From: Selaginella moellendorffii
Lineage: Eukaryota > Plantae > Lycopodiophyta
Assembly (NCBI RefSeq): GCF_000143415.4
Contig: NW_003314315.1
Span: 62,001-126,000 of the forward strand
Direction of reading: 5' to 3'
Length of the DNA: 64,000 nt
The notes beneath the pieces were generated by a model, which worked only from the letters and a program-made list of their open reading frames with translations, searched no databases and was not told the origin of the DNA. Both the position numbers and the translations under genes were made by a program. Below are positions 8,134-44,659 of the stretch, piece by piece (positions within the stretch are counted from its first letter, which is position 1; the number at the start of each line of letters is the position of its first letter).

Positions 8134-11100
8134 CTAGAAAGGAAAACGTGGAACATGGCTCCGGGGGTTGAACTGTTGGCATTGCTCACATGCCTTTGCA
8201 TAGGCCAAGCTGTTCTAGTGAATCCGAGGCCAAAAGTAGCCATGGCGCAAGAAAAGCTGTGCTATGACCCGTCCTGAGAAATGCTCTGCACAAGAGTGGA
8301 AAGTGCAAAAGAGCTCAAGGGCCTTGTGTTCCCCCACACACCGCAACAAAACTTCCTGAGAAGTTCTCTTGTAAAGGTGTCTGTCGAGAAGGCAAAACCC
8401 CCATGCTCGGATCTCCAATGCCTTTTGTTGCACTAGTGAGGAATCTGCTGGGAATTGACCTGAATCCAGGTACACTGCAATGTCCTATAATGCTGCTGGG
8501 ACCACAAAGGAAGTAGCTTTAGCAACCAGGAACTCGTTGGGATCCATCAGGGCTTTTGCCGCATGTGAAAAGTTGGCTGGAACTCTTGGATGGTCACAAT
8601 CCAAGATAAAGTACGAGGACTGTGAACCAGTCGCTGTAAAAGAAAGGTCAGCACATTAAAATAGACATGGAAATGGATATAAGCTCCAGCAAGAAAGTGA
8701 CGAAATCACTCTAAGGTGTAGAGAACAACCATTGTTTCTTTTTCCACATCCATGTACTCTTCTTAGTCTCCTTGAATGAATGTGAGGCATAGTATGTTGC
8801 ATGTGGTGGCTTGCCAGGCTGTGAACATTGGCAAGGCATACTCCAAAAGCCTTTCTACCCGTTGTGATGTAAATGTTGAAAGGAAGTTGTTGCTCTAGTG
8901 GTTGGAGTACCGGGGCTATGCGGAGTGACTGCTTCAGTGATTCAAAGGCTTGTTGCTGAGACTCACCCCAAAAAAATGGAATATTGTGTTGTAGCAGAGC
9001 TATCAGAGGCCATGAACGTGGGGCATAGTTGTGGAGGAAATGGCAAAAGAAACCTGTTTGCCCGAGGAAGCTGCAAAGCTGCTTCATGTTGGTTGGTGGG
9101 TTCTGATCCAGAATCTCCTGAGCCTTGGCTACCTAGGGCTTGATCCCATCCTGCAAGACATCAAAGCCTAGCAACCGGCCTTCAGTCACCCCAAATTTAC
9201 ACTTTGCCGGGTTTAATGAAAACTTGTGTTGTCGGCAGGGAGCGAAGATTTGCTCCAAGTGCACAAGGTGGTCCTCAAAGGAGTCAACAGTTGTGCACAG
9301 ATCATCCATATACACCCTCAAGGTACCTCCAATCAGGTCGTGAAAGACATGGGTTATAAAGTGCTGAAAAGTAGTTTCAACGTTACACAAGCTAAACGGG
9401 AGGATATTGAAAGCGAAGATGCCCCAAGGTGTCTGGAAGGTTGTAAGATCTTGATGATCAGGATGAATGAAGTTCTGGTTATACCTTGAAAAGCCATCCA
9501 TGAAAGAGTAGTAACAGTGTCTAGCCATTTCATCCACAATCGCATCGATAAATGGAGTTAGAAAGTGATCTTTCGCAGTTGCCTTATTTAAGTCTTGAAA
9601 GTCAACGCAGAGGCAGAGTCTTCCATTTGCCTTGCATGTAGGAACAAGATTGGCCACCCACTCTGAGCTCTCCAAAGGGTAAATAAAGCTAGCTGCCAGA
9701 AGTCGCTCGATCTCCAACTTCATCTCTGAGTGAGCTGCTGGGCTGAAACGCTGCATCTTTTGACAGACTGGTTTGTCTATCTCTAAAAGCACAATACTAT
9801 GCATGATTGTGTCCATAGGAACTCTCAGAAGCTGGCTGTAGTCCCAAGCAAACGCATCTTTGAAACAGTGAAGGAGATCCAAGAGCTTTGCTGCATTTGT
9901 TGAAGCAAGTGATGTGGCAATGAAGACCGGGTCCTTGTCATCACCTAGGAAAATAGCATGAACCCTGGATTCTGGAGAAACCTTGGGCTTAGGGGGCTCA
10001 TCTATCTTAGATTCCTCCCTGACCTTGGAAACCAAAGTGCAGGGAGTGCCTTTTGCCTCTCGCATCATGGTGATTGCTTGATGTGATAACTTGTCTGCCC
10101 AAAAGTTTTCTTCACGAGGGACACTTTGAAAAGTCACCTGAGAGAACTCATCCTTCAGGTTGACCGCCCGCTACTATAGCTCTTTCAGGTTCTCTTTGCA
10201 GACTTGGTATTCTCCAATAAGTTGGCATATGATAAGTCGCGCATCTCCAACGAAAGTGACTTGCCTAAACTTGAAATCTGTGGCCAACTTCATGGCACTA
10301 ATAGCTGCCAAGTACTCTGCTTCATTAGCTGATGTTGCTGGCAAAGTGATAGAGAGGTCGGCTACTTTGTTCTCCACAGAATCGATCATCCAAACTCCAA
10401 TGCTAGCAACCTGGTTTTTGGGGCAGAAAACACCGTTGAAATAAGCTGTAATCATAGGAGTGTCCTCTTCTTCAAATAAAGATGCTAGGGACACCACATC
10501 TAGCAAGACCATCTCTGGCAAGTTAGGCAAGAACGTTGCTGTTGGATCTGGAGTCTTTGTCTATTGTTCTCTTTGCTTCTGATGCTCTAAGTGCTCAATG
10601 TCCAATGCAAGGACTGTAGCCAAGTACTTTGCAAGTGAAGGAAGATCCTCCACCAAAGTCAAGTCCAAGTCTGGTGCTAAAGTTTTAGTGTAATACACTT
10701 AGACCTGTATCGGGAACTCCACAGTAGGAAATTTTGAACTCAAAGAGGTATAACTTGCATGCAACATGTCCAATTGGCTTGATTCTTTCTGCTAGTTCTG
10801 TGTTTTGATGTCATCTTCCTTCTCCAAGAAACGGCATGACAAAATACGCATGGAGTAGTCAGCTACCGCAATTTTAGTAGGAAGATGCGAGCTGTGTGAC
10901 ACCTCATATAGTTGCCGAGGAGGATTGATTTCAACTGTGTCATGTGAAAGATGGGCTTGGTCTGGAGTGACTGTGTCATCAAGCTCCATAAGAGAGAGTT
11001 GGTCCCATGTAAGAAACGAATCGAGGAACCCTTCCTCTATCAAGAAACACTCCGAAAAGCTGGATATAGGGGCCCATACTCTATAAGCTCCGCCATTAAA

Positions 11101-14100
11101 TAAAGAGGGTTTGTCTAGAGGCTTGGCCTTACTCTCAAATAAAGAGAGTGAAGTTGAGAGATGTCTCAAGCTATTTGATTCACCTCCAACCATGTCAATC
11201 GCATTGCATGAGAAAGCATCTGTCATATAAATGGTCAACTCCACTGCCAACTCAGGAAAAACCTCTGTGAGCTCGGGAGGGAAATGTGGTGTGGAGGCCA
11301 TCTTAGTCTTAGCCTGCTAGGCTTACTGAGAAAAAGCTCTGCCGTGGTTGTTGAGAAAGGTGGTGCTATGGGTTCCATCGCTAATTTCCATCTTGCCTTG
11401 TGCACTGTCAATGGTGCAATGGGTTGTGACTTGCCATGAGAGGCTGAGGATGATAGAGTCCTTCAAAGAGGACGTTCCAAGACGTTGGTAGTTGACCATA
11501 AGGAAATCTATCTTAGAAATAACACCCTGCACTGAGACCTTGACACCATAGCAAATGCCCACTAGAGGAATGGTGTGGTTGGCAAAGGTCTTTAGCACGA
11601 TGGAGGAGCTCTCTCTAATCTATAGCTGTGCTGAAAGGGCAGTTTCAAGAGAGATAATATTGCTTCCAGAATCGGAGTCAACCAAAGCATCCTTCCTATA
11701 AGAGGAAGTACCAATCTGCACCGGGACAAAGAATGGACTAAGATCTCCACCGTATCTTGTTATGTTGACAATGTGCACATCTTGAGGAGTCCTCTTGAGA
11801 GTGCTCTCTAGTGTTCCTGACTGTGCAAACTCCTCTAAACGCTGACTAAATCCCAGGACAAGACACAACATGTCTCGAAGCAAAATGGTGACAGGAGTGT
11901 CAACTAGCTGTTGAAGAACTGGCTCCAGAACAGGAATAGTTGTTGGTGAGATCTCAGGAGGAGAAGAGAGCAGTGACTTGAAGGGGAGCTTACAAGCCAC
12001 CCTTTGTGTCATTAGATTTGGTGCCGAAAGAGATTCACTTTCAACCGATGCCGGGGGATCAATGCCAGGTTGAGCAGTTGCCTTCTTCTTCACTTAGGCT
12101 CGAGTGGCTGTGGTTTGCTGCTGTTGCCTATAGAGTTCCCCAGCTACCAAAATTGTGTTGACTGATGAGGTTGGTGCCTTGCCTTTGCTTGATGAGGGTG
12201 CTGCCTCAATTGCTTATCGCTCCAATTGCTCTTGATATGTCTCTAGACCTCAAGACAATGTGGAATTATCATCGAAGGGATGTTGTTGGATACGTTGAGA
12301 AGATGGAGGCTGAAGCTTAGGGTGAAGCTTGAAGCAGCACTGCGTGTTGTGTGTGTTTGTCTCGCAGTGAGTGCGCCAACGGGACTTAAATCTGCGTTCC
12401 TGAGTTGTAGTGTCCTCTTTCCTGGACTCCACCAGCTCCTGGAGCAGTTTGTCATGGTGTGATTGCTGCTGAAGAATGATCTCTTTTAGCTGCCGCATCT
12501 CGTTGGCAAAGTTCTCAATAGCTAGAGGTGTATGCTCAATAACAACGGGCTTTGTTGTGGACGGGTGAACAACTGCGCAAGGTGACTCTGATGGGGTAAT
12601 GGCTTGGTCAAAATCAATTCTAGCAATCCCTAGGTCGACAAGAAGCTCTCTTTCCAGCTTTGTGGCAAATGAAAATGCCTCGCTTCAAGACCTGAATGTT
12701 TTCTTAAGAAGTTTCTGCTGCAAGTTCCGATGCAGACCCACTGTGAATGCCATGATCCCCTGTTGCTCATCTTGGACCACTCTAGGATCCCAACACTACT
12801 TCCAATATGCTCAAAATTAGGTGATGTAGCTAGGAACAGACTCGTGAGCACCCTACTGGAACGAAAAGAGGTTGACAAGTAGCCGATTTGTGGGTTTTTT
12901 TTCAATGAAGCGTTCTTTGAAAGAAGCAAGTGGTGTCTGGAAGTTTGTCCGGTCCTCTGGGAGGAGAGAATCTTCCCAAGTTGCTGCTTTGCCTTCAAGA
13001 GACTTCAAGAAGTCGCAACACATACGATCATCATCGACGATCATGTTTGTGGTGTAGTAGTAATCAAAGCGATTGATATGCGATGCTGGAGAGATTATTC
13101 CAACACCTGATAAGGTCAGCAGATCACTCCCCCTATGCAGAACATAGATCTGAGGTCAAGCTAAAGGTGGCTGTGCCATAGCTCGTAGATTGAAGTCACT
13201 AGAATTTGCCGAGGATGAAGAGGACTTGGCCCGAGAAGGTGTTGTGTTGTACCTAAGTTGCCTTTGGATGTTAAAAAGTTTACTCTGTACCTTAGGGCCT
13301 TGAGGTATGGTAAAAGGGTGCCAATTTGTCACACGTTTAGTTTGTATTGGCATCAAATACCCTAAACACTGCAAATGCATGGTCAAGGCAACTAAGCTAA
13401 CAAGAGCAAAAAGACTACAGATTAGTGCTCAAGCTGCTCAAAGTTGCCCAAAATGCCTGTGACAAAGAGAAATGAGGGTGAAAATGGAAGGAGATGTTGG
13501 CCTCAAGCATATATAACCATTGGCTTGTAGAATAAGCGCTGACCTCTCGGAGTAGCCGGTAGCCAATAACTAATAACTAGTAACTAATAACTGGGAACCT
13601 ATAACATGTAACCAGTAACCCCTTGCTCTCGCTCTTACTCCTGCACCTACTCCAACACTGGCTCCTACCTTTGCACCAACTCCTGTTCCTGCTCCTGTTC
13701 CTGTTCTTACGCCTACTTTTGCTCCCTTTGTTCCCAAGGAACTCCCAACAAAGTTTAGCCCGAAAGAGAAAAATGAGTTCTCTAGTCTCAATCCTTCCCC
13801 ATTTTGACTGTTAGTGGGCTTGTTAGAAAGGGCTCAGCCCCGTCTACCCTCTATCACAAGAATTTGTGAAAAAGCTACCTCAATATTCCCCGAAATCCAA
13901 GAAGGGGTAGCCTAGAACACCAATATTGTGGAAAAATAGGTGTATGTCATTGATGTAGATCAATATTAAGGCGCTATTGGTATTTTTGGAAAGCCCACCT
14001 CTAGAAAAAAATGACATCCAAAACAAAGCTTGGAGAAGCATGAATTCTTGCTATAGAGATGACCCAATCTAGCCGGAGAAGAAAATCCTTTTGCATGCTG

Positions 14101-22149: not shown

Positions 22150-24785
22150 ACATCTATGTCTTCTAATGTTAATATTGTAAAAGGTCATGGTCCTTATTGC
22201 TTTAAAATCCATGGTCAAATATATCATAATATTGTGTTAGCACATCCTTTTAAAGGTCAATATTGAACTTATGGACAACTTTACATGCTTGACACTTTAG
22301 AAGTTACAAATATAAGCAAACCCTTTCAATTCAAGCTATGAAGCAAACTTACTTAAACATCTCGATGCTCTCCTTTATCATGTTAACCCATATGCTCAAA
22401 CGTTCAAAATGATATATGAAATGGAACAAGAAGAAGTTTGTTCTGCTACACTTTCAAATTATCCTATATATGGTGTTTATATGTTATTAAAGAATGATCC
22501 ACAATGCTATAATGCACCTTAGATAAATGATGTTGTTGTTGTGTTTGTTAGTGATGATAGAGAGCTACCATATAGTTATGAAATCTATATGTAAGAAAAT
22601 TCTAAATGTATCTCAACACTTAATTATAATTGTGATCCAATGGTTTACCCATTAATATTTCCTTTTGGTGACAAAGGCTAGCATGAAAATAATTTTAATT
22701 CGCAATGTCAAATTACATTACTCCAATATTATGCATACCATTTATCTATAAAAGACACAATACAGCTTAGTTTTAATCAACTTTTACATGTAGGCAAACT
22801 TACATAACAATATATAGTTGATTGAAATAAATAATTTGAATTACTATTGCACTCATAAGAAACAGCTCTGAGTCGAAATGTATATTGGTCTTATGAATTA
22901 TATTGCAAACTGTGCTACTAATCAAAATATAAATCCAAAAAATATTATTATTTTACCTTCAAGTTTTGGGGGTTATAACAATGCAACAAAATTATCAAGA
23001 TATAATTTTTATAGTTACTCATTTTCAAAGCTAGATATTTTCTTTACTTTTACATGCAATCTTAAATGGCCATAAATTTATAAGAACTTACATCCAAATG
23101 AAGTCCTTGAGGATTATCCAGAATTGGTTTCTAGAGTATTTCAAATCAAGCTTAAAGAATTTTTGAATAATATTACTAAAAAACGTATTTTTGGAAACTG
23201 TATTGCTTTTATATATATAATTGAATTTCAAAAGAGAGGCCTTCCACATTTTCATTTTCTGGGGATTTTATCTCATGAAAAGAAGATTAAAGATTGTGAT
23301 ACTATTGATCATCACAATTGCTTGATCTTCAAGATGAATATAAACTTTTTAAAATAATTATATCTTATATGATATATGGTCTATGTGGGCGTCTTTACCA
23401 TAATAGTCTTTACTCTTGCTCAAAAGGTTATCCAAAAAAATTTAATCATAAAACTACTTTTAGTGTTGATAGATATCTAGATTATTATAAACATGATAAT
23501 AGACACACATTTGTAAGAAATGAGTGCCATATTGATAATTGTTGGGTAGTACCTTATAATAAATACCTTTGTAAAAAATATAATGCTCATATTAATATTG
23601 AAATTTATGCTACTATAAAAAGTATTAAATATTTATTTCAATATATACAAAAAAGGCTGTGATGGTGTTACAATTGAAATCCATTCATCAACTCAACAAC
23701 TTGATAATATTTTAAATTAGAATGAAATTTCAACTTTTCAAACATACATTATATATCTACTTCAGAGGTGATATAGAGACTTTTTAAATTTAAAATGCAT
23801 TTATCCATCTTCTAAATTTTCAAGACATCTATTTTATAGAAGATTCTAAATAAATGGCACTTTAAAGAGCTACTCAAAATGATACAATGTACAAAATGGT
23901 TTAAATTAAATATAAATGACCCAAATGCTAGACAATATACATATCTTAAAATCCCTTTATATTATACATTTAAAAATCATACTTATAATTAGAATATTTG
24001 ATATTCAACAAATTTCATTCCCCGAATGTATTCTGTGTTGCCATCCAATATTGAACTATATCATTTATGTCTTATTTTACTCCATAAAAAAAGTGTTATG
24101 TTTTTTAATAATCTCAAGACAGTTAACAATATTTATTATGACACATTTCAACAAGTAGCAGATGCAATGAGGCTTTTAGCTAATGATACTGAATGGGAAA
24201 AATATTTAGAAGATGCTTACTTTTTTAGAATGCCATCACAATTAATATAATTATTTATATTACTTTGTGTCTTTTGCACTTCAAAAGACCTTTACTTTTT
24301 AAGGGATAAATTTAAGACTTCCTCTCTGAGGATTTCATACAAAAAACTCCAGTTATTCATTATCAATATGCTTTACATGATATAATAATAAAATGAAACT
24401 GCATAGCAAAACTAATCAAACTACCACCTACCTTTACCATCTGAAAATTTTGATAATGAAAATATTGTCAACTCAACACACATATATCAAAATCTTGAAC
24501 AAAATATTCCTTAATTTATTCAAGAATATTTAAATATTTTTAATGATACTCTTAATGTTATTGATCACTTAACTAAGTATAATTGATACATTTTCACTAT
24601 GTTAGGATAGACTGGATAGGAGTTGTAAGTACTTTACTCTATAATGGGGAAATTTTACACACTACTTTTAAACTTTTTGTTCTAATAAATGAAACAATCA
24701 ACTACTACTATAACTTCTAATAATGAAGTAGGTAAAAGAATTAAAGCTACTAACATACTATTATGGGATGAAATAAGTATAGTAG
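22150..24785 (+). mobile_element. Helitron Rep/helicase pseudogene
   Basis: Motifs occur in the expected order with many stops and frameshifts: GPYCFKIHGQIYH, DPMVYPLIFPFGDKG, ILPSSFGG, DIFFTFTCN.KWP, EFQKRGLPHFH (HUH), WVVPYN..L..KYNAHINIE, SIKYLFQY, and helicase LLWDEIS. Confidence 0.9.
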
Positions 24786-26179
24786 TGCTAATGTGCATAA
24801 TTGAACTACAATTTAGAGAGGGTCTAGGCCACAAAAGCTGCATTGCATTGCTGGTACACTCCCTCACCAGCCCTACCTGTGGTGCTACTCACACAGCACA
24901 GGTAAAGTAGCCATAGAACCCTAGAAGTGCATGATGCAACATCTGTCACCACGGCCTCTCCCCTTCCCAACCACATATGCATGCCACTTATTGGCTGCCA
25001 CAACATTGAGCCAACATTCCCAGAAACCATGGCTACTGACCCTAGTTGGAGCCTGGGGTGGCCTCCCCTTCTTGAGAACCATGGCTTCCAAAGCTGCCCT
25101 GGGCTTGGGATCAGATGCCTTCATTTATATATATATATATATAGATACTTGTACAGTAAACCCATGCATGGCATAGTCCAAGTGGCACCAGGCATATATG
25201 CATTTTAAATGGTGCATGACTATGAAACAATGGGTTATACATGAAGGTTATATATGTGGCATAGATGACCCATAGGTGATCCTATTCATCGTCATTAGGG
25301 TTCTTGAGGAGGAAAGGGTTTTTGGCTCAGCACCTTGTTCTTACCCATGTTGCTCAATTTTAATAGTGTGGCAGGTTGTTATGGCAGTGAAATTGATATG
25401 GATTTTTGGCAATGACTAGAGAAGTCCATAATGAGTAAGTCTTGCCTATAGCTCAAATTTATCAAATTGGACTCATATGCAAATGCTGTGAATAGATGTA
25501 GTGGCAAAAAATGAATAAATTGTGGGGTTGCTATTGGGCTACAACACTTCTTCAACTAGTGAGAGTGAAGATGGAGATAAATATGTTTTGGTGGCGAGTA
25601 GATGAATTTTGAATAGAAGGGTCTTCATTGTGGTACTTTTTGTAGGGCTTCAATAATTTGTTGAGATTGAGGGGATTGGCTAGTGTAGTGATATTTCGTG
25701 TATGGATGCACTTCAAGATTCTTGAGATAAAGACCATAGCTTATCTTGCAAACTATTTAGTAATTACGTGGCCAACATTATATAAATATATGCAGGTGGT
25801 GAATTTAAATTAGACGGGGGTGTAATATAGGATAATGATTGAGTAAATTCTTAACCACGTCCAAACTAATATTCCCATGAAGTATGTAGGGATAAATTGG
25901 GGAATTATCAACTCCCATATTTGTTGTCAAGCAACTAGTTACTATTTTAGTGGGTGTTAAATTCATAAGGCATTAACTCTACATGATCCAAGAAGGCTAC
26001 AAGGTAGGCATTTGTCACAAATACATTGATGGATTTACACTAATGAGACACCTATACATTATGCTATATGGATTTTAAATATTTTTCTTCCTTATCTTTT
26101 CCAACCACTATTTTTGTGTTTTTGTAATATATGGCAAACTTGTAATTTATAAGTTTTACATCCATGTCATGATTTGTGA

Positions 26180-27560
26180 GGCAACACATTTTATTGCGGC
26201 ATGTGAGCTATCTATGAGCAAAGAGGTCCATGCTATTTTCAACACATATACATGGGTTGTACATCACTTTAGGAGGCTGAAATGAACACAATAGTGTGGA
26301 GGTTGATATGATCCAATATTGGGGCATAGAGGCAAGAAGTTTCATACACAATATGGAACTAGATAGGCAATTTATATTTACTTAAAATTAACCTTTCTTA
26401 CATTTATTTTAAAAGTGCATCAAGTGTTTATGGTGAGAATTATACAAGTAAATATTGCGGTTTTATAAGCATCTATTTGAGTTTATGAAGGATATTGTTA
26501 TTTTTAATATAAATAATGCATGGTATAGGCAAAGCTTACAAAGTGTATTTTCATATCATGAAAAGCTGCATAGATTTTTTTATTGGCTAGAGATGCGATA
26601 TGATGTTATTTAGTTTGTGTGTAATTGTATTTAGTGCTAAACTCCTAATAGTCCCCCTTGTGTTGCAAAAGGACAGTTTAAGTCAATTATAATTTCCCAT
26701 TCATTTGATTTGATAGGGCCTTTTCCATAGTCAACTATTAACAATGAGTATGTCATTATTGTCTTTGATTACTTGACTTGCAAAGTGGACGTCAATGCTC
26801 TTACTAGTATATTTGTGATTATTATTAGATACTTCCTCCTCAATGAAATGGTGTTTTAGCATTTTTATCTAGAGAAGATTCTCTTGAATAATGGTCCTAC
26901 ATTTCTACTTGAGGCATTTCATATTTTAACATCTCAACTAAAAATACTTTCACGAGTGTTTATCATTCGCAGACAGATGGTTTGGTAGAATGGCTCATTT
27001 GAACCTTCAAGGGGATGACCACGAAGTACATAAATTGTTTACATTCGAATTAGAATAGTTATTTACCATCTTTTTGGTATGCATATGTCATATGGGTACA
27101 AAATTCATTGATGTTAGGTCTTAAGATGAATATTTAACAAGCATTCTTCCATTAGTTTAAGCAAAGTTTATTGAACAATTAGGCTATATACAAGTAGGAT
27201 AACAATGTTATTACAATTCCCATCATCATCTACCTGTAGAGTATAAAGTGGATGATCTAATGTTAGTTTGTTTTCTAAATCTTACAATACATGGTTTGTC
27301 TAAGGGTCTCTTTGCTTAATGGAAAGGACTTTATTGAGTGTTGTGCAAGTTGGATTGCAAATTTATAAGGTTCAGCATAATATTCAACAAATTGATCCTC
27401 TAAAAATTGTGTATGTGCAACAATTGAAGTGCTTTGTATAAAAGGATTAAAAACAACTACCACCACTTATAAATCCACCATTACCTCCTAATGTTCCTCC
27501 AAATCCTAGTATATCAACTAAAGAAATTTGATTACCTTCCATCTTTCCGAGAGGAAGGCA
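26180..27560 (+). mobile_element. Highly decayed gypsy RH/integrase remnant with a possible PPT
   Basis: FDLIGPFP, VIIVFDYLT, NNGPTF and YHSQTDGLVE-like motifs at about 26700-26990. Purine tract GAGAGGAAGG before TGATAT at about 27549-27561. Confidence 0.6.
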
Positions 27561-27725
27561 TGATATAAGATCCAATTGTATAGGTATTATGTTATATATT
27601 AATATTAGCATAATAGGATTTTGATAATTATGGTTTCAATCTAAATCATTTACTCTTGTATATAAGCTAAGGTTTTAGGGCTATTTGAATATATATAATT
27701 TTATATTCCATACACTCACACATAT

Positions 27726-27972
<247 letters not shown>

Positions 27973-28536
27973 CTGTTAAATGTGTGTGTGAGCCTTAAAA
28001 ATTTTATTTTATAGTATTTTAAACTAGAAGTCAAAATTTATTTTTGAAATTCGTGTCAATATTTATACTGGTTTAAAGAGTATACTCGAAATTCAAATGT
28101 AAGTGACATATTCTAGTATTAATTTATTATTTAAAAGTTTTTAATATTTAGAGGAAAAGTATATTTTATTTAATAATTAATAAAATTTTAAATATTCTTG
28201 TCAAAGAATATTTTCTTAAGAATGATAAGATTAATGTAGCTTATTCATCTAAAAATCTTAATCATATTATATCTTTCGAAATAGGTACAATAAGATAGTT
28301 TATTTTAAGGATATTAGGAATAGGAAGTTTTATATTTTTATTAATTTTATTAATTTTTAATGCTATAAATTTTTTTTAAATATTAAAATATAAAGTTATT
28401 TACTCATTCAGTTCCTAAGCATTTCTATATTAAACTATTATCAATATACAGTAAGTATAAATTATTATTACATTAATTTGATAAAGAGCTAAATAAAATT
28501 AAACTTCAATTTCTGGTAATCTAGTAGTAAAGTATA

Positions 28537-29463
28537 ATGTTTGAAAAATTGTTATTTTCTATTTTGTTATTTTTAATTTTTATATGTATTTTATCTGAAG
28601 ATATTGAATATGATGTTGGTGCACTTAATGGTATAACTGTTGAAGCAGCAAGAACTATTTTAATTATGATTTCAAAAGCAATTCAACAAATACCAGATGA
28701 TATACTTCCTTTAGGTCAAAGTTTCTATGGAGATATTTCATTGTCAAATTCAAATAATAATATTGCATTTGGTATTTTTGCATTAGATACAATTGCAAGT
28801 CTTTGTCATGTAGATGGTGATGGCCACACAAATGTAGGACGAGTTGTAAGAGGAACACTGTATGATATTTTAGGAAATTCTGCTCATAAAATATTAAATT
28901 CTTGTGCTTCATATATTATTATAAAAACTAACCAATTTGTTATCTACTATTTCATCAGAAATTATAACCTTGAAAATTTAAATCAGAAAATAAACACAAA
29001 CATATATAACTCAAGAAATCAAAACATTATTACATCAGAAAGAATTATTAGATGTGATATTTTTTCATATATCTTAATAAGTGGCTATATTAATATGCCC
29101 CATCAATATTTATTACCAACACAAATTTTAGTTTCTTTAAATCAAAAGGCACACTTATATTTGGATATTTATTGTAATTTAATATTATATGCAGCTAATA
29201 AAATTTTATGGTCAACTGAAACATCAAATAATGGCTTAAAATGTGTTTTAAGACTACAAGAAGATGGGAATTTAGTTCTATATTCTTTTAATAAAAGTGT
29301 TCTTTGGCATTCAGATACTTATTGTAATTATCAAAACTGCCATGAAAATGCAATATTAATACTGCAAAATAATTGTAATTTAGTTTTATATTTTTCATAT
29401 CATAAAACATTAAGCACTAAGCCATTAACTCAATCTGTATGGGATTCAAAAACATTTTGTTAA
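28537..29463 (+). CDS. Secreted protein: signal peptide, unknown N-terminal domain and C-terminal bulb-type (GNA/B-type) mannose-binding lectin; intronless and very AT-rich
   Basis: 308-aa open frame with a hydrophobic N-terminus. Three B-lectin sub-repeats: LYLDIYCNLILY..LWST.T, LRLQEDGNLVLY..LWHSDT (intact QxDxNxVxY) and LILQNNCNLVLY...VWDSKT. Confidence 0.8.
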   Translation: MFEKLLFSILLFLIFICILSEDIEYDVGALNGITVEAARTILIMISKAIQQIPDDILPLGQSFYGDISLSNSNNNIAFGIFALDTIASLCHVDGDGHTNVGRVVRGTLYDILGNSAHKILNSCASYIIIKTNQFVIYYFIRNYNLENLNQKINTNIYNSRNQNIITSERIIRCDIFSYILISGYINMPHQYLLPTQILVSLNQKAHLYLDIYCNLILYAANKILWSTETSNNGLKCVLRLQEDGNLVLYSFNKSVLWHSDTYCNYQNCHENAILILQNNCNLVLYFSYHKTLSTKPLTQSVWDSKTFC

Positions 29464-33400: not shown

Positions 33401-36096
33401 AGTCCTGCAGTGCCGCGCGAGAGTGCGTTCTGTGCTCCACCATCACCACGACCAATAGCGGATGCTTTCCAGCAGACCAGCTCGGCGTTGCGGCCGCCTT
33501 CGCGGATTTCCCCTTCACCAAGATTAATATGGAGATATAAAGCGCCTGGATCTCCACCTAGAGCCACCCCAGCAACAAGCTTGAGCCTTGAACTTTTGAG
33601 TTGCAAGAAGTCCGCCAGTCTCACCCCTTTGCTAGAAGTGTCGACAAATCGAGAGACACCGACGACAGCTTGGACTTCACGAACTTCAAGTGTGAGTACC
33701 ATCTGTGCAACCTGTTTAGTACAGGAGGACGCATCCGGCTCCGAACTTGTGAGACATGCCAAGAGCTCGAAGACTGCAGGTTGGTCCGAGAAAGTGAAGC
33801 GGAGACGTGGAAGAGAGATGTGTACGTTCGAAGAGGACGTTGCCGTGAGAAGCTCCACCGTTGCAGAAGTAGAGTCTGAACTCAAAGCAGTAGCTGACGC
33901 ATAGTCGAAGTTGTGTCTTCCGGATCCTGCATGTTTTTTCTTGGTTGCAGCAATCCCATCCCAGATCTTCCTGGCAATCCTTGGCCCAGTCTTGTTCTCG
34001 GTCCACTTGATAGTTACGCATGCTTTTCCCTGACTATCACTTCGTAGTCTGACAACTTCAGCGTAAGTTGAGCTGGATATCGAGTAGAGCATGCCGTCGG
34101 TAACTGCCAAAGTTACGCTTTGAAGCTCCCCCCTGCTTCCTTTCTGATGTTCATAGACGAAGACTTGAGCTTCTCGCTCACTGGTGAGTCCGACGTCTAA
34201 GAGAAATCCAGCCTTTCCCCTGTTAGCCGCAGTCAGGAATGTTCTCACTGACAGTACCGATAAGTTCAATTTGCAGTTACTTCTGACGGGATTTCCAACG
34301 TCTTCCTCTTGCCTGTTGCTACCCTCTGAAGAAGCTTGAACCCGATCAAGAGTCTGGGCCAACTTCTTCAGATTATCAACATCAGCCCACAGTACCACAG
34401 GTTGCAGAACGAGCGAAACTTTAGTGCCAATGAAGCTTGCGTTTCCGGAACCAGCCCGATGATACTTTTTTAGAGCCAAGTGTACTGCAGGACTTCCAGG
34501 AGAAGATGCTACTTTGAAAACCTTCATCCCACGGCCACCGTGAAGGCTAATAGGGAAACCAGGTAGCACCATCTGTGATATACTGTCAAAGCACTGCTTC
34601 TGCATAACTGATGGCCCCAATTGAGTAGCCTCGATGAGCATCACGTCCGCATCGACTCTGGATTCTTCTCCAGATAGAAGAGTATGCAGGGTTGCATCTT
34701 TAAATACCAATTGTAGTCCATCCGGGACTTTGTCGTACAGCAAGGTAGCAGACAAGGAAGAAAACCTAGCAGTAATCGAGCATTCCATTTGTATCTCTGC
34801 ATGAAGAAACGTTATAAATATAAACCACAAGCAGCAGCTAAAACACCTTGTGAAGTTCCAGCTAAGTCCGATACTGACGCCGCACCAAATGCTGATCGAG
34901 TCCAGTTCCAAATACCGCTGCTCGTCGCGCTTTGATTCCAAGCGTCAAAGCATTCAAAAAACTCGTCCATACTGCAATAACAAAAACGAAATATGAAATG
35001 AAGAAAGAGAGAAGCCATATGACGTATTGACTTACCTTGCGGCGAGATCAGGCTCGGAAAACTCAGGCTTCCACATCCAATCGGCAATCACAGAGAGCGT
35101 AGACTTGCTCGTCGAAGGAAAAGAATCAAAGCCTTTGCCATCAAACATTGACGACCTCTGTCCCTGGATAGCAGACTCGTAGAAGCTGCTTGTGTCATGG
35201 TAGACGGACTGATCAGCAAAATCGGAAGGCACGTAAGAATGCGCTACAGAGACGAGGTGGTTTACGTCTTCCACTGACGCCTCCAGCTGAACAGGCTCCA
35301 CGGAGATGTCAAACTCAATCTTCGACAATGCCAACGCTGCCGCTTCCTTGCATGGAAGAGTCACTTGAATGGAGCCAGACAGCCCGTTCGTTCCCAAGAG
35401 ACGCACTTTCTTCTCCGTCCCAACATCCACCGAAGCTCTCTCGAACTCAATAACTTTCACCAGGTTGGAGGACTCGCCATCTTTCGCAGCTTCATAGCCA
35501 TACTTCAAAGACGGCACCTGGAACGTGACATAGCTCTCCGAGCCAGCATTTCCTTCTATCCCAACCGTGACAGCATCAACGTTCACTCGAAGGCCGAGCA
35601 AAAGGTTCTTGATCATCTGGCCTATGATCCGGACTCCATCACTCACTCCCAAGTACGTCGGAACACCTGTGTCGCTGCTGCTAATACCAGGCAGCTGGCT
35701 ACTACTACACCCCAGGCCGCCTCCATTCGTGCTGGAACCTGGCCTCGACTCACCACTTTGACGAGGAGCCACCAAAAGCTCCAATCCCTTCACCTCGATC
35801 TCACACGGAAGCCTCACGACTATCCTCGCAATGGAGCCATACTTCAGGATCAATGGCAAGCTCTTTATCTGGAAGAAAGGAACGATCGGTGAGAACTTTC
35901 TTGTCTTTCCTTGTTTTTTTTCTCAGCTTACCTGATCGTTCACGTAATCGACGTTGAGGACGAGATCCGTGAGCGTCCCTGTGCCACTGCCCAGCTGCAC
36001 GTCCAGCTGCTCCACATCGATCTCCTCGTTTAAGAACCTATTGAGACGCTTGAGCAGAAATTTGCACAAGCGCTTGGTCGCCCACTGTAGCACCAT
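30490..36096 (-). CDS. ATG2: Autophagy-related protein 2 (multi-exon lipid-transfer protein)
   Basis: Chorein-N start MVLQWATKRLCKFLLKR..IDVEQLDVQL; CAD-like region (TCSDTIAAFGRLVADL); IRVDYIPRRLD; ATG_C region QPSDTREGFQQAYESL...GVRNGMDPDRK. Short GT-AG introns. The stop position assumes a final small exon. Confidence 0.93.
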
Positions 36097-37148
36097 TGCC
36101 CCTGTCGCTCGCTTGCCGGGATGAGCAAGCAGGCGATTGAAAGTTCTGCCGGTGAAGCGCTATGGCGCAGCGCGGAAGCTGGCCTGCTAAGAAATCACAA
36201 TGCCGCGATCGTCCTCCTCGTCGTCGGGAGACTCCTCACCCACGGATTTTTGCCTCACCATCAATCTCGAGCTGGAACGCGGCCAGCGCTTGCGATGCGA
36301 GAAATCGTTGCACGATCGCTCCCTTCCAGAAAACCCTATCAGGGGCAAGAAACCCTAAACAAGGGTATGTCTCTTTTTTACCTTTGATAAGATGATGCCC
36401 TTTTTTACCTTTGGTAAGAAACGTTTTTATCTGTTTACCTTTGATAAGAAAGAAACGGTAATCAATGCAATTTTATAGCCATCTAATTGGAAGTTTTGAT
36501 AGGCGGCATATGGTGTGCAATTTGTAAAAGGGTGGATTTCACTCACACCATGTGTATGCCTGCTATTGGTCCACGTGTATTATGAGTGTGAAAAAAACAC
36601 AGGCATAGAATATTTTACAAATATCCAATCCTTATGCCCCAGATGGGACATCATGCCCATAGCAATGACCCATGCTATGTATGGAATGGAGCCATTCATG
36701 GCCCATAGACCCATTTCTAGCAAGTTGTTAATGTTGCAAACCAAATGAACAATCAACCAAATTGCATACCATATTACCTTATCTAAAGCACTATGTTCTC
36801 ACATCTTGCTCCTGGCGCTCATGGCAAAAGAATTGAATTATCTTTTTTTGGCACACCTCTTTTAACATAGTGTTCATAACAAATGTAAGTGAACTCCATC
36901 TAGCTCAATTGTAAAGCCATGGATATATACTGTCTAGAGTTATGTCTAATGCATCCCATTGAGTTTATCCTTCGTTCCCATTGATTTCCAATGTAGTTCT
37001 CTCAACACTTTAGTTTTGTACCATGATGCTTAGAAGATTTGCATATGACTCAAAAATAGGTTGAAGTTTAACTAATTCGATGAATTGGTGAGGCTCATAC
37101 TTCAATTGTGTACTATGCAATGGTGCACAGTGTTGATGTTTAGACCTA

Positions 37149-37411
37149 GAGTTCTCTCAAAAGGAGCATGCTAAAGGAGATTTGAGAATGTGGAAGTTGC
37201 AATTGCATGTAATAACATTTAGGATAACAATAGACACTTTCAACATTTTCCAATTATAATTATTTCAAATTGGATCTGGAGTTCTCTCAAGAGGAGCTTG
37301 CTGAAGGAGATTTGAGAATATAGAAGTTGCAATTGCATGCAGTAACATTTATGTGAGAAGAGTAATAATAATGGACACTTTCAACATTTTCCAATCATAA
37401 CCGTTTCAAAT
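37149..37411. repeat. Imperfect tandem duplication of ~125 bp inside the transposon
   Basis: GAGTTCTCTCAA..GGAGATTTGAGAAT..GAAGTTGCAATTGCATG..GACACTTTCAACATTTTCCAAT occurs twice in succession. Confidence 0.85.
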
Positions 37412-38160
37412 TTTGAAATTTGTAAAACAGGTTTCTAAGCATGGGGCAAAACTATCCAATGTATGTTGTGCGCAGTGGTTGAAGAACTAGAGTTTTCAGG
37501 GATTTGAAGCTCGTGCTCACATTGGTAAGAGTAGATTTGTGACAATTTTCTATATGCTCTAACCATTTTGCAATGTTTGAGGTTTCTGGGTTTCCTCCTA
37601 GCATGGCAAACTGGAGAGGATTCTATGACTTCTTTGAGGCACAACAATGGATCCAACAAGGGACAGGACCGAGGATTTTATATGATGCCTCCTCCTCTCA
37701 AGGCTCAACAATCCTTCCGACAAAGTAGCCCAAGACTACTTTTAATGTTGTGCCAATCACCAAGGGGAAAAGTCCTGTTAAAGAAAGCAATAGCGAGGGA
37801 TATGTTACTACTCGAGATGCAAGCAAGGACAAGGTCACAGATCTAGAGGGTGATTTTGGTTTTACCATGAAATAAATTGAGAGTTCCTCAAGTGAGGATG
37901 GGCATCATATAGCACCTAAGCTCGATAGTTTTGACCCAGATCCTAAATTAGGAGCTGTTTTGGAAGCTATAATGATTACTCTTGGTGAAGCAAGCATAAG
38001 CCAAAAGGGTACCAAGGGCTCCAAGTGCCTATAATGAGTATTTGTGGAATATTTTAAATATTCTTACCTTTAACTTTGCCAATGAACTAGAAAGAGTTTT
38101 TTTCAAAGTGTGAAACATATTTCAAGACAATTATCTATTTTTATTGTGGAAGTGTCTAGA

Positions 38161-41100
38161 TTATAGTACTTTTACAACATCAGCCCAATCCATACAAGCT
38201 TTTTGGATTTTGGAGTGCCCGGTAGATCTTGTGTTCTCCATTAATGGGTATATTAAAGGGAAGAAACTTCTTGTGTGCATGTGGAGAACCTGGGAAATTG
38301 AGTAGATGATGTACCTTGTCTCTACTTGGATCACTTGGATCCAAATAGGCTCTCCCAATTGGAACTTTGGAGAATCAACTGTAAAGTGATGGAACTTGGA
38401 TAAATGTTTTGGGCTCATATCTATAAAATGTTCAAACATACAAGAGTTTTAGTTGTTTGTGAAAGTAAATAATTATAAATGATATCCACAATCCAACTGT
38501 GGAAGTTCTCTCCAAAGTCCTAATCAAAGATCAGGTAGTTGATGAACTCCACAGAAGGAATGATCATCCTTACCCAAAAGACTTGTAATAAAGCATTTGT
38601 CCCAATGAGTGAAAGCCCACCTACCAATGCTAGACTCTTATAAAGCCTTTGATGAGCTTCCATGTGCATTAAGTGTTGGAAGCCATCTCAAGGTAAGTCT
38701 CCCATTACATTTGGCTTGATGAATAGGTAATGCTAAACCACTGCAGCTACGCATGCCTCCACAGCTTGCTCATAACCTTCACCAAGTTAGGTGAGTCTAG
38801 ACTCAAGCATTGCATTGTAGTCAGTAATTGCAGGTTTTTTAGGATGGAATCCACAAACTTGCCCCGATTGCCCTCCTCCTTTAGGCTTGATACACCTCGC
38901 AATTGGTTGAGTGCATTCTAAATATGCGGTGAGCATGCCTTGAGGTCCATCTCATATAGTCCTCCTTGGGCAAGTTGTCAATCATTCTTATTTGGAACCT
39001 CTCCAGTTGCAATTGCCAATGTTGCAATTGTACACATGCGAGATACCTGTGCATTACATTTGAACACTTGGAATAGCAACTAGCCCATAAAGATAACCTG
39101 TGCATATAGAAATGAGGAGCATATAAAACTTGTGCTTTAAATTTAACTTACCACATCTCGCTCTTCTTGTCGCAACATCCTAGAATGCACTAGCATCCTG
39201 GGATGCCAATATGTGGTTCCTTCCCCAAGCACAAATAGTTTACGTGTCTGTAACATAAAGTTATTCTAGTGAGCCAAATGAAAATTAGACTTACCGATTC
39301 TGTCTCCCACACCAAAGCTCCTCCAATCTCAGATGCATAGACCACTTTGTAATTCGGTGTGCAGAGATTAGTATTGAAGGCAAATTGGAAATAACTGAAT
39401 TCATTGTTTGGTGCAATCTCGAAGGACAAATGAGGGAACTCTAATTCATAGGCAATCTATTGCTTACCAGAATGTGAGACAGCCTCAAATATGTATGAGC
39501 AAATTTGTATGACTGAAGCATGGCCTTCTCGATGCAAAAAAGGGAGAACTTACAATACAGTATTGCAGCAGTGTCAAATAGTTCTCTCAATTGTTGTGTA
39601 GTTGCCCAATTTCTACACAGGTCTCTGCACAAAACAATAAGATGGTACTAAATGCTAAGAAATAGATACATGTACCTCCTCTCAATGAACTATGCTATTG
39701 TGGACTTAACAATTGAAGGAGGCGCATTGATACTTCCTTTAGCAAGGAGCTGTTGAATTATGTTGTCACAAAAAACACCTTTGTATTGTGCTTCTGAAAG
39801 GCCAAGCTGAAGGAGAACACTTTCCCAATCTTGCCAATGAGGCATGGCTTGGCTGAAAAGCACGTGCCAAAAAAATATTTCACCACCAACCCAATGGAAC
39901 TTAGGGTGTTTAGCAATAGCGTCCAACATCTTCTCATCATTTTTGCTCTTCACACCAAAGCAACCAAAAAGCTTGTGTTTCAGTCACTACACCTATGAGA
40001 GAACTTCAACATCCCCCTATGCCCTCACCTCAAAGGCTATGGTGGCATCTTGTAAGGCAGAAACCTCCTCATACTACAGCATGATGAAGTTGGCACTATC
40101 TTGAGTGGTTAATTGAACAGCTTCATTAAATGCATTGATGGCACTCTACTATAGAAAAGTTGTCAAGCAACTCTATAATAGTAAGCGGAGTGAAGCTACT
40201 TCCCTCTAGAAAGGGGGGTGGAAGCACACCATGGTCTTCAAAGCCTTCACCATCACTATCATACACTACTATTGGCCTATTTGCACTCAAAAATTAGAAA
40301 ATGAAGAAAATATTCATTTATATTAATGTTTATTACTAGTCGCATGGCCTGAAGCCACTATCTCTGGTGACAAGGATGTCTCCGGAAATCCTTAGTGCAG
40401 TTCATCCCCACCATCACCTGTTCTTCGACTCCGGTGATGTCCATGTTATCTTGTGTGGGGAGATTTTCTTCTGGTAATGGAAGAATGTCCTCTTCATTTG
40501 TAGAGTTTTCTTCTTCATTATTCTTGTCTTGGTTTGGTTTTTGTGTGGCTAGCCTCAGGAGAAATGGCTTTATCACTAAGGGATTATCATTTGCAATCAA
40601 GGTATTTGTAATAGCTACAACTGCAAAGACCACAACATATATTTGTGATGAGGGAATTTAAAATAATGACTTACCTTCATAAACATCCTTCTCTTCGAGT
40701 GCTCAGGCTTGTTTTTGATAACTTAGCCAATATTTCTCAGTAAGATGCTCCATAACATTGTATAGGTATATTACTTTTGCCCGGTTGCCATTAGCCTTGT
40801 TTGCTATAGCTCCTCATGATATTTTAGGAGGCTAGTAGCAAAGCCAAATAGAGCTGAGGCTAAATTTTGTAGACTCAACATGGGCCTCACCACCATTAGA
40901 CTGCCTTGCACATCGGATAAATACTCCTATGTTGCTCATGGATGAAGGATGGATTCCTAAGGCTTGGAGTGATAGTAGAATCATATATTGGGTCGTGTCG
41001 GGCTAGAAAGGATTACTGGAGTATAAGCCACCCCATATGAGACACTCTGGGAGGTCCACTGTCAGCTCATCAAGTTCTATCACCTTCACAAATGGCTTTC

Positions 41101-42200
41101 TTTTCCGCCCATACAAGTGTACATGCCAAGTCTTCGGGATTGCAATCCACTTGGTGACAAGAATTATGGTGGATGGCCAGGGGACTAAAAGTGTCGTAGA
41201 CGACATCCCACCAATGACTTTGGATTGACTACCACGACGTCTACGACAACAAGATAAGGACTATCGATTGTTATCAACATAAGTGTGCACTATAGCCACA
41301 AGTGGTGAGAGAGTCTCACATAGTGAAATGAAAATGAGTCAAACAAATCCAAAGAAAAGAAAATTTGAAGAGTGCATGGGGTCATGTTATATCTATGGCT
41401 CACATGGCAGCCTGCATTGAGGGTTAGCTTAAATATATCTAGATGTCGAAGCTCCACTAGATAATGATGTCAATCCTTGGGAGTAGTTATGGAATGCTAA
41501 TGGGGAACTATAAGCTCGCTAGTGTGGCAGCATTGTCAACTCACCCTACACAGAAAAACACATGGAAAAAAAACAAGTACAAATAAAAAACTTACCAAAC
41601 TAGACCGCTTGTTACTTCATGAGGTAGATGGCTAGGTATTGGCACTTGTACCGGTAAATGGAGTTGTGAGAGTTGTAGCAACTGGTGGAGTTGCAGGGCT
41701 GGTAGTAGTGGCACTATATGGGCTTTCGTGAGTATGTCCTGTAGTTGGTGTTGGTGGTAGCATTCTAGATTGGACAACACCATATACATAAGGCGTCTAG
41801 ACTTGTTCATTTTGAATGCTCAGGTTGCTGCTTTCTAGGGAAGGTAAGGAGAACAAAACATGCTAGAGGTTCTACATATGTTGTAGTGTATGCAATGTTA
41901 GGCAACGCTCTACTTGCTCAAATGCAATTGAGAGCTGTGGATGGGATGCTGTTAGAGTTGATGTCCCTACTGCAGAGCTTGGAAAATCAAATGGTTGGCA
42001 TGTGTCTCGCGGGATTGTTGGCTGTACCAATTGCGGAACATCGAGTGCTTGGCTGCATGCTCGCAAGTTGTTTCCTGCATAGTGTCTACTGCTGTTGAGG
42101 CATGCGGCATTCTTGCTTCGAGCCTAGAAACCACAAGGGATTGGTTATGCAAACCTGATTGAGGAAAAACTACCCACCATCGCAGCTGTGGCACTCTTGC
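38161..42200 (-). pseudogene. Second gene of the transposon: probable HECT-type E3 ubiquitin ligase pseudogene (5' limit uncertain)
   Basis: The last exon reads FEHFIDMSPKHLSKFHHFTVDSP and then, through frameshifts, QFPRFSTCTQEV/FFPLIY at about 38250-38300. This resembles the HECT C-lobe pattern L..FL.F.TGS...LP.A.TC...L.LP.Y. Minus-strand splice sites occur upstream. Confidence 0.5.
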
Positions 42201-42859
42201 TTGGGCGATAGTCCTACAATCGGGGGAGTGTGCATTAGAAGCCTTGCTTCCAGTTAAATGACACGAATCAATTGGAAGAATGAATGAACCATCGACAAAA
42301 ATATGTCATAAAATAAAATTGCCCTGTATCCAAGGCACAATCAATATGGGTGGGACTTGGTGTAAACCCTAATCCTGAACGTGGGAACCCTAAAATTGAA
42401 GAAATCAAGAATTGAATTTAAATTTGAAATGTACACTAAAAAACACTTAGTTTTCTCTGAGTATAGCGAAGTATAATTTTTCCAAAGCTTGTCGCTTCAC
42501 TGATGTTACTATAGACAAGGCACTTTCAATGTAAAGTGGTAAATCTACACCCGCAACATCAACCATTGTATACTCAATTGTTAGATCCAAATGAAGTAAA
42601 TATTGCTCGTCCAAGTTGAATCCCTCCTGATGCATCAAAAATGCCTAGTTTCGAATAGTGCCAAGAGCTTGTAAAGTAGTTAAACACAACGAAATAGATT
42701 TAAAGAAATTGTTCTATTCTTGCTCAGATTACCTCTGACAGAGTTGCACCTTTGATATTGGAGAGAAATAGTCCAAGAAGGTCTTCAATATCTTTTTCAC
42801 CAACAACCGGCATAATCCCACAAAAGCACAATTTATAAAGAATTTTATAACATTACCAA

Positions 42860-44138
42860 AATTCTTACCCAAGCTCTCATTCCATCTGTTGAAATAAGTT
42901 TGCAAGAACATGAGATGGTCTAAAGTAATTACCACATCGATACGGACAGATCTCATAGAGGTTCCAGGTTGCAACCCAATGTGAAATATCTTTCTTGAGG
43001 TATGGAGCAAAGACATAATGTAAACTCTGGTTGTGCCATGGATTAGATACATCAAGAATTCCTATGTCTTCCAAAAAAGGTGCTTATTAATCTTAACAAA
43101 TGCTTTATGCGTTGTAAAATAAATTTGATTTAGTCCTTATTTGGAAAAACTCTAACGTTGTGAGTACCTGGTTACTTGTTAATGTCCCATGTATGAAGTT
43201 CCTAGCTGCAGGACCCCAACAGCAAACCATGTCCCTCTCAACCTCATTGTGCTTTGGAGCATTATCGCTCCAGATGCATTTGGGCCTTTTAAATCAACGA
43301 ACAACCTATGCATATGTGTTGAATATTGCATGGGATTTTTTGGAGGTAGCTACCTCACAAGCTACAATATAATGAGTTGCCCCACAAATAATGGTATGTA
43401 TATAGAAACCATAGCTTACAAGCTTGCAATATGCTACAATAAACATGTTACCACATGTGCTGACAAAAAAGCATAAATGAAAGAATATTCACAATCCATA
43501 TAGCAAAGTGCATTAGCCTCCTCATTCCTATAAATTCGTCGTCGAATCTTTGTCATGTGCCTTTGTTCCAACCTAGTTGGATTATGAGTGGTTAAGGCCT
43601 CACGAATTTGATGTCGGCTAAACTGATATCCTCCAATTTGACAGCTAGATCGGGAATTGATAATCCCCCAGTTTGTGCCACCTTGATTCATGGCATTGTT
43701 AGTTCCAATATGATGAAGTACCTTTTTGGGTGGTACTTTATAATATACACCTCTCTAATTTGGATCAACAAGCTACATGTATTTGTATAGTGTTGGCTTG
43801 GAAATTCTAAGATAGCATGCGAGGTAAGCAGTAATCTTAGTCTCGAGGATCTTTAGATGCATTCAGGTGCCAAATGCAATTGGACTATCAAATCCCCTCG
43901 ACTTCAAAAAATTATGGAAGGCCTAGAAATGTGCAAATCATGAATCTAGGAAGCTAAAAACTAAGCAAACCTCTAGGAGAGCATTGTTGTCACTATTCAC
44001 ACCTGAACCACAGTCCGAATCACTAAAATTGGATGAAATGTTATTCATTTCATTTTCCTCCACGTCTTCTAGTAAACCTAAAAGAAAAAGTTTTAGTGAC
44101 ACAAATTTGAAGTAAACTAAGGAGGGAACTATACTCAT
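42860..44138 (-). pseudogene. Integrase-core DDE transposase pseudogene (IS3EU-like), with introns
   Basis: HTH-like LRISKPTLYKY, then FSRHQIREAL..NP..IRRRIY....NALCYMD, KLVSYGFYIH, RPKCIWSDN, FIHGT..NQ and LEDIGILD.SNPWH..LHYVF..WN. This follows the family pattern RR.Y.V..PN.LWH.DG.HKL...P..VR.D.G.EN...G.S.HNQRIE as I recall it. Confidence 0.8.
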
Positions 44139-44659
44139 GGTAGAAACTTAAAAGTCCATAGAGAGCAATCGAGTAGTAAATCAAAGCTACTTCCAACATT
44201 GCCCACAAAAACATTTGAAACCAATCACTAATAAACCAAGTTACCTTTCACATCTATTACCAAAAAACATGCCAAATAACAGAGCACTAAAGCAGCATAC
44301 TAATGCAAGGAAGCATCTCCTAAATCTTATGACCTAATGAATCTTTATGTCATGGGGTCAAACTTGATGATATATGGCATCTATGTATAACACATTGTTC
44401 ATTATGGGGACATTATCAACCCATCGAACCAGCATCCATGGGGTATCCATGAGGCATCCAAATGACATTTAATGCCGAATCAATAGAAAACTACCGCATG
44501 AACATTATATTGTGAGTGAAATCTGCCACAGTAACACTCACCCTTTTCCGTATTGCACGCCATACGGCGCGTATTATGATCGTTGCGCCACGCGTGGTCG
44601 CATAAACCCTAAAACTTCTTTCTTTCTTTCTTTCCAACAGGCTAAATTTCGGGGGGACG

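Follow-up and report, generated by a model that had tools for sequence, protein, structure and literature searches.

A decayed GingerRoot transposon copy in Selaginella moellendorffii with a probable HECT-like gene

We analyzed a stretch of 64,000 nucleotides from the spikemoss Selaginella moellendorffii (assembly GCF_000143415.4, contig NW_003314315.1, positions 62,001 to 126,000), here called the window, and focused on an element of 8,056 bp at 36509-44564 that starts with TATGG and ends with CCATA. Between these ends lie a DDE transposase pseudogene on the minus strand, a second broken gene in the same direction with similarity to HECT ubiquitin ligases, and a small gene on the plus strand. 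The original prediction had described a two-gene element in which a transposase is paired with a HECT-like gene. We recovered this co-oriented pair, but the plus-strand gene is present as a third one. The element is quite probably an old and now dead member of a GingerRoot family with many copies, a cut-and-paste transposon of the IS3EU/GingerRoot superfamily that carries a HECT-like gene.

The boundaries of the element are defined by terminal inverted repeats, and the TAT..ATA repeats that had been noted at this locus were confirmed. The left repeat (36509-36534, plus strand) starts with TATGG and the right repeat (44539-44564, minus strand) ends with CCATA. Both are identical at 22 of 26 positions, and the alignment runs from the first base at both ends. 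Its local score of 32 lies above the maximum of 29 found in 500 shuffles (17 ± 2.2). Beyond a 13-nt insertion or deletion that follows the 26-nt repeat, a 12-nt block, GATTTCACTCAC, is identical at both ends. The original inverted repeat was thus probably about 50 nt or longer and has decayed since. A pattern search revealed that the initial 16-17 nt of the repeat occur once more, in inverted orientation, at 36758-36774 (minus strand, 94% complementary), and this copy likely is a subterminal repeat rather than the end of a separate miniature element. The 265-nt stretch 36509-36773 was considered as such a miniature element and rejected, because no separate peak in depth is seen there. The left subterminal region furthermore contains a tandem duplication at 37140-37412 with a unit of 130-141 nt and 88% identity (families D1 and D4); one contig derived from another copy skips 37229-37386.

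Direct reading of the flanks identified the pentamers CGGCA (36504-36508) and CGGCG (44565-44569) as candidate target-site duplication. The letters of the proposed near-perfect 5-bp duplication are present, but they do not carry much weight. Chance alone would produce a match at four of five positions with a probability of about 0.016 for each length tried, and the norm of the superfamily is 6 bp. We therefore do not take the duplication as exceeding chance.

The transposase pseudogene was located at 42450-44138 on the minus strand using Pfam (rva_4) and tblastn. The piece 42880-43083 matches Pfam rva_4 with an E-value of 6.6e-7, which is better than the curated cut-off, and P0010, a 175-residue rva_4 protein of a metagenome contig, aligns with 178 codons of the window at a tblastn E-value of 5e-17 (4e-22 for the full frame). 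The four transposase blocks LWH.D, IDG, R.D..E and HNQRIE are all recognizable. In the catalytic core (43754-42868) the first and second catalytic Asp codons are kept (43496-43494 and 43266-43264), the position of the catalytic Glu (43161-43159) now encodes Thr, and the reading frame is interrupted by seven stops and one frameshift. The first exon is acidic and opens at a putative ATG at 44138. A GT..AG intron of 48 nt can plausibly be placed at 43970-43923, and a splice-like GTAAGA site directly follows the core at 42868. These data agree well with the predicted intron-containing pseudogene with an integrase-type DDE core. Pfam searches with the N- and C-terminal pieces of this decayed gene detected neither a zinc finger nor a chromodomain, and on this negative evidence the core has no HHCC zinc finger or GPY/F module beside it.

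A second relic of the same transposase family, AT-rich and truncated, is located at 25639-26565 on the plus strand inside an AT-rich island at 22-29 kb. It shares 66% identity over 654 nt (blastn), and its translation is 45-57% identical (E-values down to 4e-19). We considered this relic as source of a second HECT sequence and rejected it, because it stops after the transposase and has no HECT part. In a 164-kb metagenome contig, an rva_4 fragment was found directly after retrotransposon genes of the Ty3 and Ty1 types (L009, 2000-10255).

The ends of the element, TATGG..CCATA, fit exactly the TAYGG..CCRTA ends published for IS3EU elements of rust fungi, which generate a 6-bp duplication (PMC12730594). 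The proposed placement among terminal-inverted-repeat transposons of the IS3EU lineage with TAY..RTA ends is therefore upheld. Kojima and colleagues placed IS3EU and GingerRoot elements in a single clade, in which the ends are TA..TA and the duplications 6 bp long (PMC10045372). Within this clade we compared 39 positions of the transposase core, from KL after the first Asp to NTYA before the second, using the published alignment (Data S3 and Fig. S1 of PMC10045372). The window transposase shares 23 of 39 positions (59%) with SL_GR-020, a GingerRoot from Selaginella lepidophylla, compared to about 8 of 39 (about 20%) with the animal element IS3EU-1_SK in the same block. Judged from this core alignment, the window transposase is specifically GingerRoot-like and the element most likely is a GingerRoot. 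GingerRoot elements were described in 2019 in S. lepidophylla, S. tamariscina and mosses (Cerbin et al., 2019; PMC6839031). Hence, the superfamily is already known in land plants and in the genus Selaginella, and the assumption that the lineage is little known in plants and described from animals and fungi is outdated.

The second gene was analyzed with HECT profiles built from related sequences of other organisms (L011, L012, L003, L002 and L006/L007), while all window sequence was excluded. We scanned the whole 64-kb window in six frames with X at stops, and breaks were read through with X. The N-lobe profile revealed one significant match across the six frames, located at 39097-38873 on the minus strand (E-value 7.5e-6); all other matches had E-values above 1. 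Reading through a single frame from 39079 to 38750 increased the score to 18.9 bits (E-value 6e-8), which was reached by none of 10,000 shuffles; none of them exceeded 10 bits. The HECT-like N-lobe segment thus extends over 38750-39097. Further downstream on this strand, the HECT-like C-lobe was assigned to 38164-38448. Read through with X at two breaks, it matched the relatives' C-lobe profile with 6.4 bits (P 5e-4), a score reached by four of 10,000 shuffles.

Other copies of the element help to understand the broken C-lobe. Most of them lack 7 nt at 38324-38331 and have one extra base after 38263, and these changes bring three C-lobe pieces into one frame: an ls.e...f..F.T stretch, the piece with FPRFSTC, and a 28-codon tail with FP..Y up to the stop codon at 38163-38161. 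FPRFSTC contains the candidate catalytic Cys (codon 38279-38277), about 37 codons before the stop, and conforms to a ..P..[SAH]TC.. motif at 30-40 residues from the C-terminus. The distance between the N-lobe motif and the Cys is about 270 codons in the window compared to 242 in L011. N-lobe match, Cys and stop follow each other in the order and with the spacing of a HECT domain. We conclude that the second gene is, as far as its sequence tells, a decayed and divergent HECT-domain gene, co-oriented with and downstream of the transposase. A co-oriented HECT-like pseudogene had been proposed from the FPRFSTC motif. The gene is supported by the N-lobe profile, but the motif itself was rejected as stand-alone evidence, since about 10% of simulated 8-kb elements contain its class by chance and a second, non-homologous match unrelated to HECT occurs in the window at 27217. 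Upstream of the HECT-like domain, the region 39193-41800 on the minus strand consists of stop-poor pieces, including a candidate start of the N-lobe at 39456-39193. No Pfam family was found in these pieces. By its position, this region may represent the N-terminal part of the protein.

Among the relatives used for the profiles, two are recognized by Pfam HECT. An open reading frame of L003, one of the eukaryotic metagenome contigs reached through distant transposase matches, does so at 1.8e-8, and the last exon of L011 at 1.9e-12 over profile positions 187-301. The exon before it in L011 shares the reading frame, a single stop separating the two, and contains the N-lobe motif F..FG....LA.YG, which lies 242 residues ahead of the Cys. 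Homology of the window gene to proteins recognized as HECT is supported at both lobes. A C-lobe alignment (A1) of P0023, which derives from L011, with L003, P0022 and P0024 yielded a profile that aligns to the C-lobe of HUWE1 in the PDB; using the N-lobe block profile of the relatives, no HECT chain was found in the PDB by sequence. A word-based homologue search with the L003 HECT piece returned near-identical fragments only. Compared to cellular HECT E3 ligases such as HUWE1 and the plant UPL families (PMC3712016), the relatives share the L-P-x-A-H-T-C-F..L-P-x-Y-E-S stretch of the C-lobe, and the Cys about 37 codons before the stop as well as the F..FG....LA.YG motif of the N-lobe are found at the usual distances. 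In contrast to the cellular enzymes, Pfam sees only the last third of this divergent HECT domain, and only in intact relatives. Furthermore, the window gene is transposon-borne and has no recognizable upstream substrate-binding domain.

Some of these relatives are of interest on their own. The HECT-like gene at 9392-10486 of L011 is nearly intact, with one in-frame stop, and Pfam sees the last third of it only. Copies of this divergent family of HECT genes are present in another eukaryote (L012, 1231-10225, and also L013-L015), where open frames of 323, 307 and 710 codons are located upstream. A DUF4283 frame near the L012 copy suggests a plant host.

The third gene occupies 37441-38034 on the plus strand. 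It starts with an ATG at 37441 and consists of an 84-nt exon (37441-37524), a 57-nt GT..AG intron (37525-37581) and a 453-nt exon (37582-38034) and contains three in-frame stops. Its end at 38034 lies 127 nt from the stop of the HECT-like gene, so that the two genes converge. When spliced, the N-terminus matches about 11 of 13 signature positions, compared by eye, of what we take to be the pattern of the RNase H1-type hybrid-binding domain (Pfam Cauli_VI). The N-terminus of the small gene therefore looks like a putative hybrid-binding domain. Exon 2 alone had no Pfam match.

To estimate how common the element is, contigs of two DNA runs from the same organism (X1 and X2) were placed on 35700-41699 at a likeness of at least 80%. 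About 1,700 contigs were placed per run across all likeness classes, with a count of 1,746 contigs at 80-99% likeness, and the differences from the window are mostly transitions. In the left flank (35700-36499) the summed word depth was 145-330 in X1 and 17-33 in X2. From the 36500 bin onward it rose to 9,400-11,700 and 730-830, respectively, which is a step of about 30-fold at the left repeat. Unaligned ends of other copies just inside the left boundary read GTGCAATTCGTAAAAGGGT, which is the same repeat core. A repeated family with common ends was thus seen for the left end, both by the depth step and by the loose ends. Since the step coincides exactly with the left repeat, the element in the window is one copy of a multi-copy family. 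This family amounts to tens of copy-equivalents (about 20-45), where summed depth must not be read as a copy number. The depth of the left 1.2 kb is about twice that of the interior, which lies at 4,000-7,000 in X1 and is even over 37700-41699 without any internal step. The HECT region, at 4,800-7,000 in X1, equals the rest of the interior. This even and high depth indicates that most copies in this genome carry the HECT region. No RNA run proved to contain the interior of the element, in a search that was not aimed at RNA.

Searches in other data sets returned little. A word-based homologue search with a 106-residue transposase piece gave no match, and 10 distant fragments sharing 31-46% identity were all that an exhaustive search with a 68-residue piece retrieved. 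The protein libraries thus do not contain close copies from this genome. Atlas feature searches with two window pieces yielded noise only. A single match to the inverted-repeat pattern in metagenome contigs was located in a bacterial-looking contig and was discarded as a chance match.

The copy in the window is old and dead, as had been predicted. Its inverted repeats have diverged by 15%, and none of its three genes is intact: they show stops or frameshifts, and the catalytic Glu is lost. It is a fossil without function of its own.

A GingerRoot identity agrees with what has been published for S. lepidophylla, where the elements occur in the same genus, have TA...TA termini, a length of 8-9 kb and many copies, and encode a DDE transposase without HHCC finger. 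Unlike the window element with its HECT-like and third gene, no second gene is named in the main text of that description (PMC6839031). IS3EU elements of animals and fungi in Repbase share the TAYGG..CCRTA ends, the HNQRIE-type E block and the LWH.D and IDG blocks and are said to encode two proteins, but in the core block the animal element is far more distant than GingerRoot. In the literature searched we found no description of the second protein of the Repbase IS3EU entries. Additional enzymes are known from fungal members of the superfamily. IS3EU elements of rust fungi carry TET/JBP dioxygenase and alpha-kinase genes, and the authors proposed that TET/JBP helps the elements to escape silencing (PMC12730594); the Styx/REP9 element of Zymoseptoria contains four genes (PMC8232023, PMC10853768). 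The cargo of these elements differs, being dioxygenase, alpha-kinase and DUF3716 proteins in fungal hosts as opposed to a HECT ligase and a hybrid-binding protein in the window.

We propose a layout and a mode of action for an intact relative. In the direction of the transposase, it would encode the DDE transposase and then a large protein ending in a divergent HECT domain. On the opposite strand, and converging on the HECT gene, it would encode a protein of about 190 residues with an N-terminal RNase H1-type hybrid-binding domain. By analogy to DDE transposases and to the superfamily, the transposase would bind to the TATGG... ends and the subterminal repeats, excise the element and reinsert it with a staggered cut of normally 6 bp. 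The HECT protein might form a ubiquitin thioester on the Cys of its TC motif and mark a protein of the host or the element, for instance one that acts in silencing or repair, or the transposase itself, although a role against silencing or in transposase turnover is speculation. Equally speculative, the hybrid-binding protein might bind RNA:DNA hybrids or double-stranded RNA derived from the element. A wider claim would be that a HECT ligase of their own is a regular part of spikemoss GingerRoot elements and of related IS3EU-type elements in other eukaryotes, and that those of Selaginella also encode an RNA:DNA-hybrid-binding protein, both as working accessory genes that act on silencing or repair proteins of the host or on the transposase. 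We hold this wider claim only tentatively, at slightly less than an even chance.

While the kind of transposon is known, its HECT cargo looks unreported. The terms HECT, ubiquitin and ligase do not occur in the main text of the GingerRoot paper (PMC6839031). None of the papers found describes a DNA transposon with a HECT ligase, which is weak evidence, as subscription journals and Repbase Reports were mostly outside the search. The small third gene is likewise unreported for GingerRoot elements in the literature searched. If the wider claim holds, this would be the first transposon-encoded HECT ligase, as far as the literature searched shows. Transposon enzymes beyond the transposase show how mobile DNA handles host control. 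ULP1 proteases are carried by some plant MULE and CACTA elements. Bringing in or hijacking ubiquitin ligases is common among viruses and bacteria, and a cut-and-paste transposon that carries a ligase would be a new way of doing so. The TET/JBP dioxygenases of the fungal elements are a further example of cargo other than transposase (PMC12730594). As a plant superfamily, GingerRoot has been little studied, and its elements of 8-9 kb have so far been described via the transposase core only. The window now yields a testable gene map with transposase, HECT ligase and hybrid-binding protein, and the multi-copy family offers natural copies in which intact genes and selection could be sought.

Several observations weigh against our reading and have to be considered together with its alternatives. 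The depth data cover 35700-41699, with the left boundary and the interior next to it. The recognizable inverted repeat consists of 26 nt plus the 12-nt block only, compared to 100-150 nt in S. lepidophylla GingerRoots. These are flanked by 6-bp duplications, while the duplication in the window is ambiguous: a 6-bp version (GCGGCA and CGGCGC) needs a 1-nt deletion at the right junction, and this in a single decayed copy. One could imagine a composite, in which a short GingerRoot relic with nested unrelated repeats is bordered by inverted repeats from different insertions. The doubled depth of the left 1.2 kb and the inverted repeat copy at 36758-36774 would fit such a structure. However, no internal step like the one at 36500 was seen across 37700-41699, and the size of the element is close to the published GingerRoot mean of 8.6-8.9 kb (PMC6839031). 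We consider a composite very improbable. The assignment of the third gene is also open to criticism, because the hybrid-binding signature was matched by eye and the intron and a stop leave pieces of 18 and 19 residues. Finally, the HECT-like gene is preserved in pieces of 20-95 residues, and Pfam HECT (PF00632), a search that had been suggested earlier, matched none of the 38 stop-free pieces of the window. Comparison of the C-lobe profile with the 95-residue window piece using hhalign gave a P-value of 0.085, the piece-wise window scan with the C-lobe profile and small jackhmmer runs on the HECT question found nothing, and the catalytic motif is within its chance rate. The region between transposase and left end could then be other decayed sequence with chance profile matches and without any HECT gene. 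Against this stand the unbiased six-frame scan, with its single match at the predicted place and strand, the shuffles, none of which reached the N-lobe read-through score, and the order and spacing of N-lobe match, Cys motif and stop. Chance similarity is hence a far-fetched explanation.

An alternative that deserves somewhat more attention, unlikely as we think it is, treats the element as a Pack-type GingerRoot, in which the HECT-like and hybrid-binding-like parts are captured fragments of host genes that do not serve the element. Indeed, 28.6% of the GingerRoots of S. lepidophylla hold captured gene fragments (PMC6839031). Moreover, other organisms have copies of the HECT family that lack a transposase close by: around the copies in L011-L015 no transposase was found within the DNA examined. 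On the other hand, HECT-like sequences adjoin rva_4 transposases in two other lineages at a distance of 4-8 kb, once in L003, where the transposase lies on the same strand about 4 kb away, and once in L002/L006/L007. The order and orientation of HECT and transposase, however, differ among the window, L003 and L002/L006, and no inverted repeats were found around the related loci, so that element boundaries could not be delimited there. Given the missing element ends and the copies without transposase, linkage within one element is not shown outside this genome, and the association there is suggestive only. Within this genome, several points stand against gene capture. The depth of the HECT region, compared to 145-330 in the flank, implies that most copies carry it. 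The gene covers the whole HECT domain up to the stop codon and is not a fragment. Its HECT domain is too divergent for Pfam, whereas the nine HECT genes of the S. moellendorffii host all belong to standard subfamilies according to a plant HECT gene survey.

The element is located between two divergent host genes. One side is occupied by the first exon of ATG2 (Pfam ATG2_CAD, 6.9e-11) and the other by a zf-4CXXC_R1 gene (8.9e-18). The insertion is thus in the short promoter region common to both genes. The introns of the flanking ATG2 gene are 50-90 nt long. Telobox-like motifs, AAACCCTAA, occur on both sides of the insertion (36330-36450 and 44600-44620), and the promoter region of ATG2 and zf-4CXXC_R1 contains a 20-nt direct repeat in three copies with a period of 27-30 nt (36373-36449).

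The AT-rich island mentioned above looks like a graveyard of decayed transposons. It contains a fragment of a Helitron Rep gene at 23076-23354 on the plus strand (Pfam Helitron_like_N, E-value 4e-18). A long microsatellite of TA and TATC type (27679-28011) separates the transposase relic from an open frame of 310 codons at 28531-29460 on the plus strand, which encodes a bulb-type lectin domain (Pfam B_lectin, E-value 5e-11) in sequence of 21-31% GC.

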